Shown piece after piece: positions 31,601 through 45,146 of a stretch of 64,000 nt of DNA; positions within the stretch are counted from its first letter, which is position 1, and every line of letters begins with the position of its first letter. The notes beneath the pieces were generated by a model, which was not told the DNA's origin, ran no database searches, and saw only the letters and a program-made list of their open reading frames with translations. The position numbers were made by a program, and so were the translations under genes. The stretch is from Zygnema circumcarinatum SAG 698-1b (lineage: Eukaryota > Plantae > Zygnematophyceae): assembly GCA_037447605.1 (NCBI GenBank), contig CM074814.1, positions 2,542,001 to 2,606,000 on the forward strand. Direction: 5' to 3'.

Positions 31601-32177
31601 GGGGGTGTCAGACTTAACAAAATGTTACGAATATCGAGTTTTTAGTATTACGAGAATCGAGGTTACTAAGTACTAAAAATCATCGCGCCCCCGAACCTAA
31701 AGCGAACCGAACGGAAGTCAACTGTGCTAAGTCAACGGGTCAACGTTGCGAAGATTGACCCGTGGGGTTTACTGAAATTGCATTTCTTCGCACGATTTTG
31801 TTCGCACCCAAAAGAGGCGCTGAAATGGACGTGCGAAGAAAATACTGGCGAAAATTGCGTCAACGTGACGTCATGGTTGTTTTCCCGGCTTCCTGCCCGC
31901 GCCCGCGCCCGCCCGTGACGCGCAACACGACACAACGACAAGCGGTCTCCGCGCGCCGCGCCGGCGCTGTTTCTAAGTCTGAGGGCCCCGCGCGAGGGCG
32001 AAGTTGCGAAGACGGCGTTTGGAGAAGTGCGAAGACGGCGATCGCGGAGTGCGAACAGGACCGCGCCGCGAGTGCGAAAAACTACGCTCGGGAATTTTAG
32101 TTTTACTGACGTTGACTCGAAATGTTACGAATATCGAGTTTTCAGTATTACGAGAATTTTTTAAGTCTGACACGCCC
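31601..32177. mobile_element. MITE (about 580 bp) with related TIRs
   Basis: Left end GGGGGTGTCAGACTTAA; right end TTAAGTCTGACACGCCC; TA on both flanks. The subterminal block AAATGTTACGAATATCGAGTTTT.AGTATTACGAGAAT is repeated at about 31620 and 32120. Confidence 0.75.
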
Positions 32178-33714
32178 TATTGGGCAGATTTGGTCCAAAG
32201 TCTTCAAAGGCGAAAAAGCGGGTAGACAAAAACATTTCTGGGCTTTCAGATATGACACGTGGTTTGTTGGCTTGCGGATACAGTTTAGGACCCCATCATA
32301 TTTTCCACCTGGTTTTAGCAAATATCTGGCGAAAATATTGCTTTTCGCAAATATCAGGTCTGTGTTACCAATAGGCGAGCGGAAGTATGTTAGAGTTCAT
32401 GTATGTCCGTACGTCTCGTATCGTATCGTTTGCTGGTATATCGTACCGCATCGTACCGTATCGTATCGTAGCATCTGACACTACGGTGGCCTCTTGCGAC
32501 GGCTTTGTCAATCCCATCCGCAACTAGCCAATCGGAGCACGCCACGTGTTACACAAGTACTACTTTGTCGCATGTGCCCAGTCAAAAAAATGGCCAAACG
32601 TTTTGAGAGCTGCTCTGGAATCCACTCCACCATTCAGAAGGGCCCATTGCACGGATCGGGCGGGTAAAACCTTTCTCGAGCTGCCCGGAAGCGATGACGT
32701 CATCCCTCGGCGCCGCGGAGTGGGCCCCACAGCGCCACGCAAGCACACAAGGATTTGGTTTGGCCTCGTCCGCGGATGCTCATGACGTGACGTCAGATCG
32801 ACCCGCCGCGCCGCACACCAAAATGTAGATGACAATGTTCGGACTTGGGACCAAAGCCAGCGCACAACATTCCTTGGCGTGATTTTTAACTCATCACATA
32901 TCCTCGATAGCGACGCGGTCATGGTCTGCTGCGCAACCAAAGAGAGCGATCGACTGTCTGCATGGCGCCGCAATGCCAACGAGATACTAAAGCCGACAAC
33001 AAACCATCCATGCATCCATCCCCCAAGCGTGTCTTTATGCATCCCCTGTGCATGCCACTGCCATGGTGCGTCCACTCCCTCATCATGCCATGCATGTGCA
33101 GGTACGCGCACTTCTGTAGAGCCATAATAAGTTTGACCGCCACCTCCTCTAAAAGGTGCGAAAAGAGGGAGGAGAGGCGTCATGCGCCCCATGGGCCACT
33201 CTCGCATGGGACAAAGTCGCATGCCTATTCGCACTCGCTGAGGCCGCGGTCGTTCTGTGTTGTGTTGTTGCGCAGGCCCCAATCCGCTGCTTCAAGACAC
33301 GCCTGCATGCATGCAGAGGAGACCGTCAGGGAGCAGGCCGATGAAGGAAGGTGAATCTTGAAAGAACGGGGGAAAACGACTGGAGGAGATTTTAAGTATA
33401 GCATAGAAAGCATCCGTTTTTGGAATGCAACAAATGACCTTTCTAGGAATTTGATGCAATAAGGTAACTCTTAGTTTCTTGTGAAGAGGATTATAACGGA
33501 TCACTCGTAAAAAAAAAGCTAACTTCCCATCAGAAAGCCTAATGATAACAAAGCAAGTATTGACTGCAACGCATCTTCCAGTTCAACGATTAAGCAGAGT
33601 CGAATCCAAACATTCCAAAATGATCAGAAGAAAGACAGCACTACGCAGCAGAAGCCATAGGAGGTGTCCCGGGACAATGCAAAGAGTACCAGCATCGAGA
33701 ACTAGAGGAGAGGC

Positions 33715-34778
33715 TCAAGGAGAACGGCTCGGAGGGGGACGTCGAGGAGGGGGTCGACGGCTGGGAGGAGGTTTACGTAGAGGGGGAGGGGGACTTTTTT
33801 TAAAGGGGGCGGGAACGGGGAGGAGGGGGACGCGGAGGAGGGGATAGTGAAGCTGCAGGATTGCAAGGGCATTGTGTGAGTTCCCGTTCATAATTAAAGG
33901 TGAACTCACTTCTTCCAAGACTTTTGACGTCATATTTCATCATCTATGTGCATTTTAGGCTATATGCATCTCCACGGAAATTCAGATTCCTATGTCATTT
34001 TTCGGACTACGCAATTTTCTCTTTGAAAAGCAGAGAAGTCAAAGTCGCAGGTTATCTAGCTACTGCAAATGTAGACGAGATATGTTGTAGCTTGCATGGG
34101 ATTGGATTGGGTTGAGAAAATTATTGAAAGCTAAAACCACGATATCGGAGCAGCACTCTCGATATATCCTAATAAACTTTGCACCATTTTTTGAATGGGC
34201 TTGCAGAGTTCACCAAATAATACTTGCCATGTGCTTCTAGAAGGAGAATTGAATCTCTTTTATTGGCGGCATCAAATGGATCGCATTCAGGGTGCTCTAA
34301 CAGCAACGACAATGTAAAATTTGATAGCAAAAGTTGATAGTTTCCACAACCCATGCCACCCTTTACTTTTCCATTCTTGCGAGTATCCACAAGCAGCAAG
34401 TTGCAACTCACCACACGTGCCAGATGCCAGCGCATATCCCTTGTCGCATGTGCACGTGGCCGTGCCGTACCCGCACGTGCCGCGGCCCCCGCACGCTCCC
34501 TCGGGAGAGCCGCTCTGGCAGAAGGCCGCGCACTGTTGCGGAGGTCTCTGCTTTTTAGGGGCGCGACATCCTGTGACATTGCGATAAATGCAGTTGTTGG
34601 TATACTTGAAGTAAGCAGCATAGAATTGGCAGAAGGGTCGCCCTCCCTTTGTAACGTTGATTGGCCCGGAGAAGTAGTTGTCTTGGATCTGCAGGTCCTC
34701 GAGGTACTCGCTTGCAAGAGTTATGGAGCCAGTCAACTTGTTGTTGGATAACCGCCTGATGACAATAACGGCGGCGCG

Positions 34779-34827
<49 letters not shown>

Positions 34828-37800
34828 CTTTCCTACAGAATCCGTACAAGCCTTCCTTGTGTCACAGCCACAGAAAACATTCGCTTGTGCTGTCTGCAAA
34901 GTCTCTGACTCCATCTTCACGACCCTACGCAACCTTCAGCCTTCAAACATTGAACCCCTAAATCTCTAAGCCTTTCCCTACATCCATTCTACCAGCAATC
35001 CCATAAACCCTGAACCCACTAAATCCCCATAGCTTCTAAACCTTTTAACTCATAAACCCCTAATCCCCTCGAGTTTTAAGACCTAAAACCTTAAACCCTA
35101 AACCCTAGACCTAATCCGTAAAACCTAAACACTACACTCTGGAAAATTACGTCCAATCTCTGGCATGCATAACTGAGCATTATTTTGCGTCAAAAAAGCC
35201 AGAGCCGTGATAGAAGTGACCAAACCGGCACCAAGTTTAAGAAAAACATGAGATAAAATCTCATGCAAGCGCGAATATAATGTAATAGTTTCAGAGTTAC
35301 GAATGCTTTTCGACGAGAACCAAAAAAATTTCAAACTGCAAATATAACGTTATGGATGCAGCGGTGCTCACAGCCATCGCAGTCGAGTGAGTTTGGTGAT
35401 AACGCCGGGCACTCTCCCCTCCAGTTTGTTGCTGCCCAAGTGCCTACAGACATACATAACGAAAAAAAAAACAAAACAACACAACAAGAAGGATTAGGCT
35501 GGTTTTGATCATGCACGCACCCACGCATGCAGGACCTATGGCGGACAACATGCTGCCATAACTAGCATTTCTATCACTTTCATTTCAGATTTATGGGGAA
35601 AAATACTCACAAGTATTGCAGATTCGCAAGGTTGCCGATAGAATCCGGAATAGACCCCGTTAGGGAATTAGAATATATCCATCTACAAGAATTGAAAAAA
35701 GGGCACTGAATAAATATGCTGCCACGACTAGCATTTCTATCACTGGCATTCCACTTCTATCACTGGCATTCCACTTCTATCACTTTCATTTTAGATAAGG
35801 GGAAATATACTTACAATGATTGCAGATTCGGAAGGTTGCTGATAGAATCCGGGATAGGCCCTGCTAGCGCATTATCATACAGGTTTCTGCCAAAAATAAA
35901 AAAAAGGGCACTAAATAAACATGCTGCCACAGAATTTTTATCATTGGCATTCCTTATTTTGGCATTTCTATCACTTTCAATTCAGATTTATGGGGAAAAA
36001 TGCTTACAACCAATGAAGAACCGCAAGGTTGCCGATAGAGTCCGGGATAGGCCCCGTTAGGGAATTAGAATACAGGTATCTGCCAAAAATAAAGGAAAGG
36101 GCGCTGAATAAACATGCTGCCACGACTAGCATTTCTATCACTGGCATTCCCCTTCTATCACTTTCATTTTAAATTGAAGGGGAAATATACTTACAGGTAT
36201 TGCAGATTTGCAAGGTTGCCGATTGAATCTGGGATCAACCCCGTTAGGGAATTGGAATACAAGAATCTGCGAGAAATAAAAAAGGCACTGAATAAGCATG
36301 CCACAAATAGCATTCCTATCGCTGGCATTCCTCTGTTTAGCATTTTTGTCACTTTCATTTCAGAGTTATGGGGAAATATACTTACAATGATTGCAGATTT
36401 GCAAGGTTGCCGATAGAATCCGGGATAGACCCCGTTAGGGCATTTTCATACAGGTATCTGCCAAAGATAAAGAAATGGGCACTGAATAAACCTTTAGTGT
36501 ATATTAGTTATTAGTTATTAGATACATAGTTTATGGGAGTTTATGGGAGCATGTGTTTGTTTGGTAGTCTAGAAGGCTAGACGGCAGAGCTAGGGTCGAG
36601 CTAGGATCTGGCCGGAGTCTAGAGGTGTGCGGGATACGCCTGAGGCGTAAGTCACAGAGACCATCGGAGCAAAGGTTCGCAACAGATCTGAACGGCCGGC
36701 TGTATGGAGATACTGAGTTGAGAGAAAATATGAATTTGGTTGAGTTCGGAATGGCACGCAGCCGAAGACAGGTGACATGATAGGCACGCAGCCATAGATG
36801 CATGGCGTGACCAACGCTTAGCGCTTGCTAGCAGGGTTGGTAGTCGCCCATGGTAGGTGCTTTGGGCGAAGTATAAATTGAGAGGGAGAACATTGAGACT
36901 TAACCCTTGATGTAGGCTGCGAGAAGCAGTAGGTGAAGCTTCTCGGAATGTGGTGAAGTTTCACAACATGAGGGTGGTAGTCTTGTAATGGAGTAGAGAT
37001 GCAGGGGAGTGGCTCGTGCTGCATGCTTGTACTTCAGTTTAGAAGTTAAGAGTTTTAGGCCGTGGCGCTTTCTTATATCTCCTTGTCTTTCAGTCTTTCT
37101 ATTCTGTCTTTCATTCTTTGCCTGGGGCTATTATATGCTTTGTGAGTGACGTCTTGTGCTTCCGCAAAGGGTGGCGTCTCCTAGTTCAAGGGGTAAAGAG
37201 ATGTCATCTTTAGAGGCATCCTCTAGCAGGTCTGGAGGCTCCGCATCTACATAAAAATGCTGCCACGACTTAGCATTCCTATCACTAGCATTCCTTTGTC
37301 TAGCATTTCTATCACTTTCATTTCAGATTTATGTGGAAAAATACTTACAACCAATAAAGATTCGCAAGGTTGCCAATAGACTCCGGGATAGACCCCGTAA
37401 GGGAATTAGTATTCAACTCTCTGCAAACAATAGAAATAAAGGGCATTGTATAAACATGCTGCCACGACTAGCATTCCTATCACTGGCATTCCTTTGTCTG
37501 GCATTTCTATCACTTTCATTTCAGATTTATGGGGAAAAATACTTACAAAGCGATCAGATTTGCAAGGTTGCCGATAGCCTCCGGGATAGACCCTGTTAGG
37601 GAATTATCACTCAGCAATCTGCCATAAAAAAAAAAAAGGGGCACTAAATAAACATGCTGCCACGACTAGCATTCCTATCACTGGCATTCCTCTGTCTAGC
37701 ATTTCTATCACTTTTCATTTCAGATTTATGGGCAAAAATACTTACAACCAATAAAGATTCGCAAGGTTGCCGATAGATTCGGGGATAGACCCAGTTAGGG

Positions 37801-38998
37801 AATTAAAATACAAGTATCTGCCAGAAAATGAAAAAAAAAAGGCACTGAATAAACATGCTGCCACGACTATTATTCCTACCACCGGCATTCCTCTGTCTGG
37901 CGTTCCTATCACTTTCATTTCAGATTCATGGGGAAAATACTTACAAGTACTGCAGATTCGCAAGGTTGCCGATAGAATCGGGGATAGACCCCGATAGGGC
38001 ATTATAACCCAAGTATCTGCAAACAATAAAGAAAAAGGGCTTCACGAGTCTGACCGATATTTCTAGCAAAATTCAAAACTCAAGTGGAAAGAATGCTCAA
38101 GTGAGCGCGAGGAACGAAGTTCAGCAACTGCAATGCACCACGTAAATGTGACATGGCATATTGAACTTGAAGCGTGCGCATGTGCAGCCGAGCCAGGACG
38201 CGAACACGCATTGCTCGCGAGGCCGCTTAGTGGTTTAGTGCTTCGTCTAATTAAGCATGTCCCAACGTCTGAGCCCTCCTTATTAATGTGAACGCGCAAA
38301 CATGCATGGAACGCATCCTTAAAGAAGGGTGTCACTCACAAATATGTCAACTTTGTCAGGTTACCGATGGCAGGTGAAATGGTTCCTCCAAAATATTTGC
38401 CCACTAAAAATCTGCATTAGGCAGGCTAGCAGTGAGAGCGTCAGAAGAAGAAAGGGCCGCGGGCAGTAGAAGGACAACTCCGGGCGGCCCTTTTTAGCCG
38501 CTTTCTGAGGAGGCTTCTTCCCGCAGACCCTCCCTCGCAGCCTCGGCCTGCAGTTCAGTAGCTATGGAATCCGCAGAGTCTCCGAAATCACAAACGGTGT
38601 TCAGTCAATGTTTGGCTCACATTTCAGTAACGCGACCGCTTGCGTCGCATGTGATCCCAAGCCAGTTGCTGCAGTCGCGGTTCCTCGCTGTCCAGGAGGT
38701 GAGCTGTGATGCGTTGTTGAATGCCGCTTTGACAGCGAGAAGAGCGTCCCCTGCGCCCAAGCGCGAGCAGATGCAGGATTGGATTGAGGCTGCAGTCCGC
38801 TTCAAAAAGCACAAACAGAGGCCACGAGCGGGCAGTCCGCCTCTCCCCTTCTATAGAAGGCGGGCGGGCGGGCCGCGGCGGCTCACTGTCTCGCGGGTCC
38901 ATGGCCGCAGCCGCGGCTTCGCGCGGGACGGCGGCGGTGGCAAAGAGAAGGACCGCCGCCGCGAGAGGGAGAGACAGCGCGCGCGCCATCGCTGCCAA
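33715..38998 (-). CDS. Secreted leucine-rich-repeat protein: signal peptide, LRRNT, 10 single-LRR 72-nt exons, a Cys-rich/EGF-like module and a Pro-rich tail
   Basis: Exons (minus strand): 38998-38887, 38750-38621 (DALLAVKAAF..LTSW..DCSNWLGITCD..GRVT), the 72-nt exons 38016-37945, 37817-37746, 37618-37547, 37420-37349, 36457-36386, 36266-36195, 36079-36008, 35886-35815, 35682-35611 and 35443-35372 (plant LRR consensus LxLxxNxLxGxIPxxIGNLxxL), 34755-34412 (two LRRs plus CGGRGTCGYGTATCTCDKGY) and a last exon from 33852. The 3' end is uncertain (stop at 33800 or 33715). Confidence 0.88.
36498..37251. mobile_element. About 750-bp insertion in an LRR intron, solo-LTR-like
   Basis: It interrupts the otherwise conserved intron motif GGGCACTGAATAAAC|ATGCTGCCACGAC. 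Termini are TGTA...TACA with an internal GTATAAAT. No clean TSD was found. Confidence 0.55.
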
Positions 38999-39005
38999 TC
39001 AGGAG

Positions 39006-39215
39006 GGTAAGGTTCAGGGCCGGAGGGAGGTCAGGGGGGAGGGGGTAGGGGTAGGGTTCAGGGCCGGAGGGAGGTCAGGGGGGAGGGGGTAGGGGTAGGG
39101 TTCAGGGCCGGAGGGAGGTCAGGGGGGAGGGGGTAGGGGTAAGGTTCAGGGCCGGAGGGAGGTCAGGGGGGAGGGGGTAGGGGTAGGGTTCAGGGCCGGA
39201 GGGAGGTGAGGGGGG
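39006..39215. repeat. 44-bp G-rich minisatellite, about 5 copies
   Basis: GGTTCAGGGCCGGAGGGAGGTCAGGGGGGAGGGGGTAGGGGTA(G/A) recurs at 39011, 39055, 39099, 39143 and 39187, directly upstream of the LRR start codon. Confidence 0.9.
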
Positions 39216-40508
39216 AGGAATGGAGGATGCGATAAGAGAGACGCCATGGCTTTCGGGGGGCCACGCGGCACGCCTTCATTGGCTGTTCGGAATTTCGAGA
39301 AATTTGCGGCGCGAACCGACTGCGACCATCCTCAAAAATATGATTTTAGCGCTGCAAGCCGCTTTTTATCACGTCACGTACCGTATACCGTAAAACCGAA
39401 CAGGTTGAAAAAAAAAAGAAATTAAGGATTTTGGCTTCTCAAAAGAAAAACCTTTCAAAACCAGTTTCTCCAAAAAAAAACCCTATATTTGTGAACACGA
39501 TTCATTTTGAAAAATGAGGAATGAATTCCTATTTTTTTTTTTCAATGCATTTTTTAAGAAGAACCAATTGAACATTGAACAATTGATTATCGTTCGTGTT
39601 CAATTTGAGTTTTCTTTGGGTCCACTAATCAACAATGAGATTTTAGCGGATCGCATAGCGCGTGGACCCCGGAGGTTGGTACAGAAATTGTTGATCTGAT
39701 CGCGTGACGAGTCGTACGGCAAAACTGGGGCCCGGGTTAACCTGATCCCTCGAATCGCACGGAACCAACGTGGCAGAAAGTGGAATCCACACATGCGACC
39801 GAACCAATTGAGTCTTTGAACTTTTCTTTTTCAAGTGCTCGCTTTTTTAAATCGAAAAAGTTTCGTCCTCGAGTTTTCAAAGTTCGACTCTCAATAAAAA
39901 TTTAGAATTGAGAAATTAAGTAAACTCGTTTCAATTTCTCAACGTGTTCGGTTTTACGGGTATTCGTTCTGTACGTCATCGGTTTATCCCGTAGCGGATT
40001 TTGTCGTTTTGTCCACGCATTCGTGCTGCTTACCGCCCAACTGGATGTACGGAAGGTGGCAGAATTCGTCCTGTAATGAGAAAAGTCCACATGTCCATAA
40101 GACTGCGTTGTCGTTAGCGCAACGTGGATCCCGACGTGGTATCGAGTTTCCTGTTCGGTTCAGTACCGTTAAACTGAACGCTTCACGGAGGGAGGAGGTG
40201 ATGCGTCCTTTATCGGGAATTCGGGACCAATGACCAGGAGATTGGAACCAAATTAGCCAACCCACCAACCATTGCATTGCCAACCATTCAATGCAATGGT
40301 TGTCTGGTTTTCTACAAACTAATTGCCGCAACCATTGGCAATAGACAACCATTGGTTCCAATGCTTGGCACCCACTAGCAACCAGTTGTTGGTTCAGCTG
40401 CTGGCTCAGTAAAGATTGAAGAATTTGAAGACTGTTGACCGAAAGTCAACCGCGTTGACCAGGAAGTGCTGCAGGCGGGCGTGAAGGAGCGGCTCGCGCA
40501 GGTTCGAA

Positions 40509-40824: not shown

Positions 40825-41134
40825 TGCAGGCGGTATTACATACGATCTATGTAGAGGCGCGTTATTCATGACGGAGAACGGGGGTGCAAACTGCGTGTTC
40901 AAATCTGTGGCAGAGCGTTCAGTCAGGTTGTGAGCTCTCTGGATATATGATCAGCTGCTGATAGGTAATTCTCTTTCCTCCCCTCCGCCTTGGCCGTCTC
41001 CACTTCTCTGGAAAGTTCCTAAACCCTAATTCTGCGGTGCTGGAGCCTGTGCTTCTGAACCCTAAATCTTGCCCTTGAAACCCTAATTTTCAGGCCCTAA
41101 ACTTAGAGCCGTCGGAAGAGAGCGGAGGCTGCAA

Positions 41135-43912
41135 ATGGAGAGGAGGCAGGGCGGAGCCGGCCAGCTGGCGAGCCTGCTGCTGCTGGCGCTGCTGGGCAGT
41201 GCCACGTGGCAGACTATGGCGCAGCAGGAGAATGATGAAGGTCTCTCCTCTCTCTCTCACTCTCTCTCTCTCGCGCGCGCTCTCTCTCCCCCATTCTCCT
41301 TCGTCCTCGTCCTCTCCTTGCCTCCTTCACAAGCCTCTTCCTCCTCCCTCTCACTCCCTTCCCCCTCCCTCCTCCCTCTCCTTCTCTCCCCTCCTCCGCT
41401 CCCACTCCCACTCACTCCCACTCTCTCTCCCACTCTCACTCTCACTCCCACTCCCACTCATTCCCACTCTCTCTCCCACTCTCACTCCCACTCCCACTCA
41501 CTCCCACTCTCTCTCCCACTCTCACTCCCACTCTTACTCACTCCCACACTCTCTCCCACTCACTCTCACTCTCACTCCCACTCCCACTCCCACTCCCACT
41601 CCCACTCCCACACTCTCTCCCACTCTCACTCTCACTCCCACTCCCACTCACTCCCACTCTCTCTACCACTCTCACTCTCACTCCCACTCGCTCCCACTCT
41701 CTCTCCCACTCTCACTCTCACTCCCACTCCCACTCACTCCCACTCTCTCTACCACTCTCACTCTCACTCCCACTCGCTCCCACTATCTCTCCCACTCTCA
41801 CTCTCACTCCCACTCCCACTCACTCCCACACTCACTCCCACTCTCTCTCCCACTCTCACTCCCACTCTTACTCACTCCCACACTCTCTCCCACTCACTCT
41901 CACTCCCACTCCCACTCCCACTCCCACTCCCACACTTTCTCCCACTCTCACTCCCACTCCCACTCACTCCCACTCTCTCTACCACTCTCACTCTCACTCC
42001 CACTCGCTCCCACTCTCTCTCCCACTCTCACTCTCGCTCCCACTCTCTCTCCCACTCTCACTCTCACTCCCACTTCCACTCACTCCCACACTCTCTCCCA
42101 CTCTCACTCTCACTCCCACTTCCACTCCCACTCACTCCCACTCTCTCTCCCACTCTCTCTTCCACTCCCTCTCCCCCCCTCCCGTCCTACCCCGCTTCAT
42201 CCCGACTCCATAAACCGGGTTTGATGCGAGAAACTTACCCTTCATTCCCCCCCTCCCCCCCACCCCATTTCCTTCCCCTCTCTTTCAGCGCCCTCATCCA
42301 AAGCCTCCGACTCCTCTCTCTCATACCGCTCCAAAATGCGCCATTCACGAATTCCCAGTTTGCGCCCTCCGAATTTTTTCCGTCCTGAATGTAAAGCTCA
42401 AGAAGAGCAGTTCCATTTCTGGAACACCTTCGACCTTGAACCCTCTCCCGCCCTTCAAGAAGCGATTCGAAAATATGAAAAATTTCACGCCGACTGCCGC
42501 GCTCAAGAAGGCAATCTTGCAGAAGCCATAGCCCAGAAAAGGGAGCTTCCCTGCAAATACTCCATTTGGATTGCTACTTATGATGGGCTTGGGAACCGCT
42601 TCCTCTCAGCAGCTGCAGCTCTGACCTATTCTATGCTTACAAATAGAGTCCTTTTAGTGGATAGAAGATGGGAGATAGAGAACTTTCTATGTGAGCCTTT
42701 CCCTTACTCTTCGTGGCTGCTTCCAAAAGGTATTGATACTTCAAAAATGCAGCGAAATCTCGACCGCATGGGGGCCTTCACTGCTTCAGCTGCAGCTGCA
42801 AGGTCTCGGAATTTGACTGCAGACATTCCTTATGCAATTCTAGCAGACATAAATCACGCAATGGAGTCAGATATGACAGTGTTCTGTCCTACGGAACTGA
42901 ACGGAATCAACCAAATTCCTGTCATGTTGATCAGATCGAACATGTACTTCATCGTGGGGTTGTATTATGATGATCATTACAGGGAAATTTTAGAGAAGTG
43001 GTTTCCCGATCGAGTTTCCTTTACGCATATAGCACGGTATCTTTTCAGTCCCGTTGACCATATTTGGGCAAAGATGATGGCTTACTGGCATGCGAACATG
43101 GAACCGGCGGAACGGAAACTGGGGATCCATGTGCGAATTTTTGAGCATCCGTGGCGGAGGGAGAAGAGTCACCGCCTCTTTCAGTGTGTGAAGGAACGCG
43201 GATTTTTGCCGTTAAAAAATTCGAGCAATTCAGGGAAGAAGACTGCCTGTTTGATGGCTTCTCTTCGGAAGGAATTTTTTGTGCATTTGATGGAAAATTT
43301 TCAGTCGGATGAAATCGACAACGAGTTAATCAGCATCTCCAAGGCCAGCGATGCGGTACGTTATAATTCTATGAAATAATTGTGATTTACTTTATGTATT
43401 TCTCTTTTTTTTGCTTTATTTTGTACCTAGAAACAAGCAGCTGGCTAAGTAACAGACCCCAAAAGTTCTGCCTTATGGGTATGCATGCAGTTTCCGTTCC
43501 AGTTCCGTTCTGTTGCATTCACATGGAACCGTTTCCCCTTTGCATGCAGGAAGTTCAACTGTTTGAGAAAGCCGACCACAACCAGGAAGTGATGATCGAA
43601 ATTTGGTTACTTAGTTTTTGTGACAATCTTGTCATGAGTCCCGGATCGACTTTTGGGTACACTGCAATTGGACTCCGCGGAAGAGATACAATTTTTCTGA
43701 ATGGGCTTTTTCACAATAGTGATGATCCATGGGAGAAATCCGTTTGCTATAACGGATTTGTTGAGCCCTGTTACCATTCGCCCCCATGGAAGGTCACATG
43801 TGCCGACGATCCTCCGTTTGAAAATCCGTGGGGCATGCGTCCAGGAGTGGTGGTACAGTGTCATGATTACCCTCGAGGAGTCCGCCTTGACTTTCCACAA
43901 AGGATGACGTAA
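41135..43912 (+). CDS. FUT: Glycosyltransferase family 37 alpha-1,2-fucosyltransferase (xyloglucan FUT1/AGP FUT-like), 3 exons
   Basis: Exons 41135-41240, 42289-43355 and 43550-43912 are in frame. N-terminal anchor, then [86 protein letters not shown] and EPCYHSPP. Confidence 0.92.
41395..42165. repeat. Degenerate (CTCCCA/CTCTCA)n array in FUT intron 1
   Basis: About 770 bp of CACTCT/CTCCCA units between the GT donor at 41241 and the AG acceptor at 42288. Confidence 0.9.
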
Positions 43913-44643
43913 TGGTTGACTTCTGAGGGGTGGTATGTTACCATGGAGATGATGTCATCAACGCAGGTGATGTTTCTAATGTGGATGATGTCACCGATGT
44001 GGGTGATGTCACCGATGTGCATGCTGTGTGATGAATGCATGCTTTTTGAGTGGTGGTAGGAAGGGGAGCGTTACAGAGAGGTAAGTTTCAGGTCGGATAG
44101 GTTTAGACATTGAAATTGAACTGCTGGGAAATTCTTTTCGGGTTTTAGGGCTTTTGGACATCATTTTTTTGTGTCACGTCTTTTCTTTAGACATTTGGGA
44201 ATTTATCATGCTTACTGCAGCTCCACTGTGAAAGTGAATTCATCGAACGCCTGTAGTGTCCAAGTTAGGAGAGTGAGAGTAGCAAGAGGGAGAGAGGCAA
44301 GAAAGGCGTGTGGGAGTGGGGAGGTTGGACCGTGGGAGAGGATAAGGGGGCAGGGGAGAGAGTGAGACAGGAGAGGGAGGGTAGGTTGCATGGAGGGATT
44401 AGATGGAAAGGCAGTGAACGCCGTATGAATTGCAATTGATTTTTTTTTCAATAAAGAATATTCATTTTTTTGTCCAAATGAAATACCTTACTCTATGCCC
44501 TCCTTGATGCTGCTTGAAGCCATTCATTGGCAGACAACAGTAAGCCCCATCACCGACCTTGATTTATAATCCAAAGCAGAGGGAGAGACACAGGGATGGG
44601 GGGTCTTGATTCATAATTTAAGGGAGAGGGAGAGGCAGAAGGA

Positions 44644-44653
44644 NNNNNNNNNN
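44644..44653. other. Assembly gap (10 N) within a GA-rich tract
   Basis: Run of N. Confidence 1.
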
Positions 44654-45146
44654 GGGGAGAGAGGGAGGGGAGAGAGGGAGGGGCCTTGAGGGAGGGGGCT
44701 AGAGGGGCGAGAGGGGGCGAGAGGGGGCGAGAGGGGGCGAGAGGGAGGGGGAGAGAGGGAGGGGGAGAGTGGGAGAGGGGGAGAGAGGGGGAAATTTGCA
44801 GCGGGGGAAGAGCGGGAGTGCGAGAGGGAGAGGGAGAGGGAGCAGAAGTGAGAGGGGAAACAATAGGGAGAGGGAACGGGAGCCAATGGGGGAGAGAAGA
44901 GGTGCAGGGAGCAGGAGCGGGAATTCGAGAGTGAGCGGCAGCGGGAGAGGGAGTGGGCGGAGTGGGAGAAGAAGTGGGAGAGGGGTTGAAACCGGGACAG
45001 GGAGCAGGAGCCACGAACAGAGTGGGAGCAGAGCAGGACATAAACCCAGTGAGGAGTATAGAGAGAGGAGACATAGACGTCTCCTCTCTCTCGCCCTCTC
45101 CTCTTGCTCACTCTCGCTCTCTCTCCTCCCTCTCTCCCTCTCTCCT

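Follow-up and report, generated by a model that had tools for sequence, protein, structure and literature searches.

We analyzed a stretch of 64,000 nucleotides from the alga Zygnema circumcarinatum SAG 698-1b (Zygnematophyceae; GenBank assembly GCA_037447605.1, contig CM074814.1, positions 2,542,001 to 2,606,000 of the forward strand). This whole stretch is called the window, and all coordinates given below are positions within it. Its minus strand carries a predicted gene with an array of small exons, each of which encodes one leucine-rich repeat (LRR). The data make it probable that an internal LRR unit was amplified within this one nuclear gene for an extracellular LRR protein, and that the copies subsequently changed on one face of the repeats.

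The array was located by scanning for 72 nt between AG and GT with an open frame in phase 2. The scan detected 11 such exons on the minus strand, all of phase 2-2 and each encoding one plant-type LRR of 24 residues. Ten of them had been reported in a preliminary description of the locus; their coordinates, AG/GT flanks and open frames agree with our results, while the count increases to 11 with the addition of the first exon, E0. In the order of transcription the features of the array are the following, with E1 to E9 placed by the exon scan.

38340-38411, minus strand: E0, divergent first LRR exon of 72 nt, phase 2-2 (mean nucleotide identity to E1-E9 48%)
35562-38040, minus strand: amplified block of nine exon+intron units, E1-E9 (Tandem Repeats Finder, exon scan and intron alignment)
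37945-38016, minus strand: E1
37746-37817, minus strand: E2
37547-37618, minus strand: E3
37349-37420, minus strand: E4
36486-37250, minus strand: unclassified 765-bp insertion in the intron after E4, with a short, target-site-like (G/T)TTTAT duplication on both sides (intron alignment)
36386-36457, minus strand: E5
36195-36266, minus strand: E6
36008-36079, minus strand: E7
35815-35886, minus strand: E8
35611-35682, minus strand: E9
35372-35443, minus strand: E10, divergent LRR exon past the array, 72 nt, phase 2-2 (mean identity to E1-E9 46%)

All of the 72-nt exons (11/11) have canonical AG/GT borders; the 5' flank consists of a polypyrimidine tract followed by CAG or TAG, and the 3' flank reads GTAAGT, GTGAGT or GTAAGC. 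E1 to E9 lie in exon+intron units of 187-204 bp with alignable introns. The unit lengths, in order, are 199, 199, 198, 963 (198 without the 765-bp insertion), 191, 187, 193 and 204 bp. Tandem Repeats Finder gave periods of 198 and 378 for the array's two halves. Together with the intron alignment these periods bear out the tandem duplication of exon+intron units that had been proposed in the preliminary description, and the intron motif quoted there is the reverse complement of the conserved array intron. Two motifs from the array occur nine times each in the whole window, all at this locus, with 0 occurrences expected in shuffles; neither motif scans nor self-BLAST found further copies of the array unit in the window. 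An intronic functional RNA was ruled out, as the introns have no Rfam match and fold with z-scores of +0.2 to -2.4.

The introns I1-I8 align from end to end. Their pairwise differences are 9-21% with a mean Jukes-Cantor distance of 0.17, and whole exons differ by 12-29% between units. The edges of the block are intronic: intron 0 matches the array introns over its final ~24 nt and intron 9 over its initial 49 nt, and the repeated block should therefore extend from ~38040 to 35562 with its breakpoints in introns. The identity of E0 and E10 with the array exons is just 46-48%, and the array derives from a single internal unit of an LRR gene that is older than the amplification. The amplification had been called recent; this is appropriate in a relative sense, but units that are 9-21% apart are not very recent. 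The divergence of the units, their private indels and the private 765-bp insertion rule out an expansion of the array by the assembly. No terminal inverted repeats, TG..CA ends or poly-A were seen in this insertion, nor does it have a second copy in the window. The intron after E8 contains a perfect 20-nt micro-duplication (35735-35784, 2.5 copies, 100% identity), which shows slippage to be ongoing in the array.

Next we consider how the copies diverged. It is established knowledge on LRRs that the x residues of the xxLxLxx motif sit on the repeat's concave face, and the five x positions are placed on the face here on this basis. Our translation of the exons gave exactly the residues listed before: QY/YW/IA/YW/QS/QY/HW/QS/QY before the first L, Y/Y/L/E/Y/F/Y/N/W/H between the two, and GY/YF/SD/NT/YE/YS/YS/YD/YS/GS after the second. 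The 23 whole codons of each exon were divided into 18 scaffold codons and 5 face codons, of which the 5' end holds three and the 3' end two. Units E1-E9 were pooled for the estimation of dN and dS (Nei-Gojobori), and changes were counted by Fitch parsimony on a unit tree built without the face sites.

The Nei-Gojobori estimates of dN are 0.82 for the face and 0.098 for the scaffold; the corresponding values of dS are 0.76 and 0.34. Maximum likelihood (ML) on a fixed tree gives an omega of 2.08 for the face and 0.33 for the scaffold. The scaffold had been described as almost fixed, and an omega of 0.29-0.33 with the two methods indicates that it is indeed under purifying selection; its Leu, Asn, Gly, Ile and Pro positions are invariant. 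Counted as Fitch changes per site, the first and second positions of the face codons reach 2.4, compared to 1.0 for scaffold third positions and 0.54 for introns. The face exceeds the introns by a factor of 4.5 (p=3e-8) and the scaffold third positions by a factor of 2.4 (p=0.004), so that the conservative acceleration of the face codons is 2.4-fold. Aromatic residues account for 22/45 of the face residues and for 0/162 of those in the scaffold. The earlier impression of aromatic-rich, fast-changing face codons is thus confirmed, since these codons surpass both neutral proxies in changes per site. This is the pattern expected from diversifying selection on a ligand-binding concave face, and we infer that the protein has a binding function and that positive selection caused the rate contrast.

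A similar contrast could arise in an old array by homogenisation, if short-tract gene conversion keeps introns and scaffold alike and selection preserves old differences in the face. Between units, the distances of the scaffold show no correlation with those of the introns (Mantel r=0.04), and support for the unit tree is poor. Duplication in a burst would account for this, and so would a degree of mosaic exchange. In some pairs of units the concordant runs are nominally long (U5-U8, uncorrected p=0.007), and the introns are less diverged than the third positions of the scaffold, as would be the case under conversion. However, a run-length permutation test in the style of GENECONV was not significant (global p=0.23), and the homogenisation suggested in the preliminary description is not upheld by it. 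Conversion tracts would also need to end, time and again, only a few bases away from face patches of 6-9 nt, and this at both ends of the exon. With unit differences of 9-21% any homogenisation is weak at best, and concerted evolution would still require selection for diversity of the face. We consider this explanation improbable. Burst or mosaic, selection for residues that differ from repeat to repeat is required to explain the face.

The course of events which we propose is therefore one of amplification and subsequent change of the face. An internal unit, composed of a 72-nt phase-2 exon and ~125 nt of intron, would have been multiplied to nine copies, likely by unequal crossing-over or replication slippage with breakpoints within the introns. 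With symmetric exons throughout and a Leu codon restored at each junction, the addition or removal of a unit would have left both the reading frame and the solenoid fold intact. In the copies, purifying selection would then have held the scaffold residues; the five solvent-exposed xxLxLxx residues of each beta-strand, which are split over the splice junction, would have moved close to saturation and become rich in Tyr, Trp and Phe. In these terms the process is ordinary germline evolution of a binder, and there is no sign here of a programmed or somatic generator of diversity.

The remaining parts of the predicted gene, all on the minus strand, are the following.

38887-38989, minus strand: exon 1, with ATG at 38989-38987, a signal-peptide-like hydrophobic N-terminus (MARALSLPLAAAVLLFATAAV...) and the donor A/GTGAGC; ends in phase 1 (read from the sequence)
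38621-38750, minus strand: exon 2, plant LRR N-terminal cap LRRNT_2; ends in phase 2 (Pfam PF08263)
34412-34755, minus strand: large exon of 344 nt with a further pair of LRRs, a Cys-rich stretch and a module weakly resembling EGF; donor G/GTGAGT, phase 1 (translation)
33800-33852, minus strand: speculative, one of several possible terminal exons, Pro-rich ASLSPPPRPPPPRSRPL followed by a stop (phase-1 acceptor scan)

The hydrophobic N-terminus of exon 1 suggests a secretion signal. The cap in exon 2 scores above the gathering threshold of its Pfam family PF08263 (E=1.3e-9, 38.6 bits versus a cutoff of 20.7), and the exon ends in phase 2, which is the phase of the LRR exons. An intron of 616 nt separates E10 from the large exon. 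In the latter, the two Pfam matches to EGF-like families are below threshold (EGF_2, E=0.015; EGF_Teneurin, E=0.0096). Matches to the Protein Data Bank are weak and are all to ectodomains of plant LRR receptors, none of them an LRX chain; those in the ESM Atlas are to generic LRR clusters only (<=0.85). A single-sequence AlphaFold model reached a pLDDT of 40 and was not used. In LRR-extensin (LRX) proteins the LRR domain is followed by a Cys-rich hinge and a long extensin (SPPPP) domain; the present gene has a Cys-rich stretch, and its only Pro-rich piece is the speculative terminal exon of 17 residues.

The donor of the large exon is good, and the acceptor scan gave several possible phase-1 acceptors downstream of it. 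Besides the exon listed above, the candidates for the 3' end include an acceptor at ~33701, behind which a hydrophobic stretch with an interrupting Arg follows, and a read-through that would end at the stop at 34287. The kinase motifs HRDxK, DFG and Gly-loop are absent near the gene and from every frame of the window; exons downstream of 34412 are candidates only. The preliminary description spoke of a receptor, a term that we do not retain: the window is free of kinase motifs, and a transmembrane segment is not established. Of the marks of plant-type extracellular LRR (eLRR) proteins, the ectodomain type of LRR-RLK/RLP/PGIP, the LRRNT_2 cap and the LxxLxLxxNxLxGxIPxx repeat were found, the latter in the 11 exons and in two repeats of the large exon; a third mark, the signal peptide, may be present in the hydrophobic N-terminus. 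The product of the gene is probably an extracellular, plant-type LRR protein that is secreted; in order, it would consist of a signal peptide, the LRRNT_2 cap, ~13 LRRs and a Cys-rich/EGF-like tail.

Some repeats of other kinds are located in or near the gene. A G-rich/C-rich unit of 44 bp is present in 4.9 copies with 97% identity at 39005-39218. It ends ~15 nt upstream of the ATG and is, according to the gene model, in the leader or core promoter of the LRR gene. Degenerate runs resembling the plant-type telomere repeat (TTTAGGG-like) occur at 35040-35135, in the intron between E10 and the large exon, and at 41020-41100, upstream of the gene. Downstream of the gene, a string of ~35 nt (…ctcgtaatactgaaaactcgatattcgtaacatt…) was seen by eye twice, ~500 bp apart (~31640-31700 and ~32120-32180); the pair may be a small repeat element.

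Several points weigh against the interpretation of the array as an amplified and selected part of a gene for an extracellular protein. The splice junctions of the gene model are predictions from the DNA sequence, and with several candidate 3' ends both a secreted and a membrane-anchored product are possible. No relatives from outside the window were retrieved: a word search with the large exon, which covers proteins of 63-200 aa only, gave no match, and metagenome scans with DNA patterns and with proteins gave none either. The case for positive selection takes it that the face codons are of the same age, and mutate at the same rate, as introns and scaffold synonymous sites. The introns evolve at about half the rate of the scaffold third positions (0.54 vs 1.0 per site); they may be constrained or homogenised, which would inflate the larger ratio of 4.5. 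The preliminary description had suggested dN/dS at the surface codons as a check. This ratio is 1.08 (Nei-Gojobori) or 2.08 (ML), and for the face codons alone, five codons near saturation, a likelihood ratio test does not reject an omega of 1 (p=0.68). The excess of changes in the face is consequently one over introns and scaffold synonymous sites only, and not a dN/dS significantly above 1.

The last result, together with the lack of homologues in the searches made, is also what could be expected if the repeat were decaying or unconstrained, with neutral face codons in a pseudogene or in a gene that is a mirage of annotation. However, all of the exons (11/11) are open and have intact AG/GT borders and polypyrimidine tracts, the omega of the scaffold is ~0.3, and its Leu, Asn, Gly, Ile and Pro residues do not vary. 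In addition the face is faster than both neutral proxies, and 22 aromatic residues among 45 in the face are not expected under drift. Decay is hardly credible in view of these data.

The structure of the exons raises the question of combinatorial use. The LRR donors end in TT or CT and the acceptors start with A or G; all four junction combinations encode Leu and keep the frame, and the symmetry of the exons claimed in the preliminary description accordingly extends to the junction codon, which is Leu for every donor and acceptor. Since the junctions are always Leu and in frame, the skipping or duplication of any unit would lead to a protein that still folds and has a new hybrid strand. It could be imagined that alternative splicing of the symmetric exons, or their exchange between loci, creates many binding faces in a programmed manner, along the lines suggested for brown-algal ROCO genes or Dscam: with phase 2-2 throughout and Leu at each junction, skips remain in frame and generate a new xxLxLxx strand. 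There are precedents for such events. In the ROCO genes of Ectocarpus, 72-bp phase-2 LRR exons are reported to be alternatively spliced (PMC11378527), and for MtSERK3 there is a report of the skipping of an LRR exon (PMC3061892).

On the other hand, the symmetry of frame and the Leu junction are an automatic result of the common descent of the copies, and all units have strong canonical splice sites. Spare LRR exons, whether inactivated or on the reverse strand, were not detected by the exon scan, self-BLAST or motif scan, either within introns or in the rest of the window, and the introns contain neither a conserved RNA structure nor an Rfam match that might act as a selector element. We give little credence to programmed diversification at this locus. 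It seems quite improbable that the symmetric one-LRR-per-exon arrays of this alga constitute a combinatorial recognition repertoire, in which modules would be alternatively spliced or exchanged between loci and faces would be assembled across junctions. A role in recognition of pathogens or mating types is pure conjecture. Amplification of one unit with subsequent selection on the face is the reading that we retain.

In the motif scan the window contained no other LRR gene. On the plus strand, upstream of the LRR gene, a gene similar to xyloglucan fucosyltransferases of family GT37 is located at 42336-43912 (Pfam E=1.6e-44). Its best match among 5.8 billion proteins has 39% identity; the others are mainly from land plants, with 26-32% identity. 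Between the two genes (41334-42175) lies a CT-rich low-complexity repeat of ~840 bp with periods of 6, 12 and 40, which yields long spurious open reading frames (ORFs) rich in Ser, Leu, Pro, His and Thr. A run of Ns, which represents an assembly gap, is located at ~44600-44700 in a GA-rich repeat region and appears as a run of X in the ORF translations.

The array offers a clean and quantifiable case of how an LRR binder can gain repeats and have its binding face retuned. The introns were copied as well and provide a neutral yardstick within the gene, so that the signal of selection is unusually easy to read. The alga belongs to a lineage near the origin of the cell-surface immunity of land plants, most of whose own LRR domains went on to lose their introns. 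Should exon skipping be seen in transcripts, or modules prove to be common to several arrays of this genome, the idea of exon-shuffled immune-type receptors would extend from brown algae to the green lineage; a combinatorial repertoire, if true, would be the green-lineage counterpart of the proposal for the brown-algal ROCO genes.

These brown-algal genes, which encode LRR-ROC-COR proteins, have 72-bp phase-2 exons with one LRR each, and positive selection acts on the repeats' concave face (Zambounis et al. 2012, PMC3341825; Teng et al. 2024, PMC11378527). The Zygnema gene has in common with them the single LRR per 72-nt phase-2 exon, the tandem amplification of exons and the fast concave face. 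The proteins, however, are of different kinds. ROCO proteins are cytosolic GTPases without the plant N-terminal cap; here a signal-peptide-like exon and an LRRNT_2 cap precede the repeats. Where the ROCO genes have a ROC-COR module, a Cys-rich/EGF-like exon follows the LRRs in Zygnema, and a ROC-COR domain is absent. The exon frame also cuts the repeat at another place in the brown algae, whereas the cut here is within a Leu codon of LxL. Furthermore, the introns of the ROCO genes contain spare, inactivated or reverse-strand LRR exons, which the scans did not find in the window. Alternative splicing has been shown for the ROCO genes, while the present array is described from genomic sequence.

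The SERK genes of the LRR-II group encode roughly one domain per exon, and an in-frame transcript without the exon of LRR1 is reported for MtSERK3 (PMC3061892). They resemble the Zygnema gene in their extracellular plant LRRs and in the tendency to one domain per exon. In contrast to the array, they have five old LRRs that were not amplified, as well as a transmembrane segment and a kinase, of which no motif is present in the window.

The secreted plant eLRR proteins such as PGIP and the LRR receptor-like proteins such as tomato Cf-9/Cf-4 combine an LRRNT_2 cap with 24-residue repeats of the form LxxLxLxxNxLxGxIPxx; their xxLxLxx residues are hypervariable and under diversifying selection, and the number of repeats has been changed by unequal exchange. 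The Zygnema gene shares with them the cap, the 24-residue repeats, the hypervariable xxLxLxx and, as proposed above, a repeat number altered by unequal exchange. Copying followed by retuning is an already known way in which LRR binders evolve, and the array does not represent a new mechanism for the generation of diversity. PGIP, which is also cited in the brown-algal work (PMC3341825), is not known to have the Cys-rich/EGF-like tail of the protein described here. In land-plant members the whole LRR domain is usually contained in one exon (PMC10588794). Unlike these mostly single-exon eLRR domains, each repeat of the Zygnema array has an exon of its own, and the introns were copied together with the exons.

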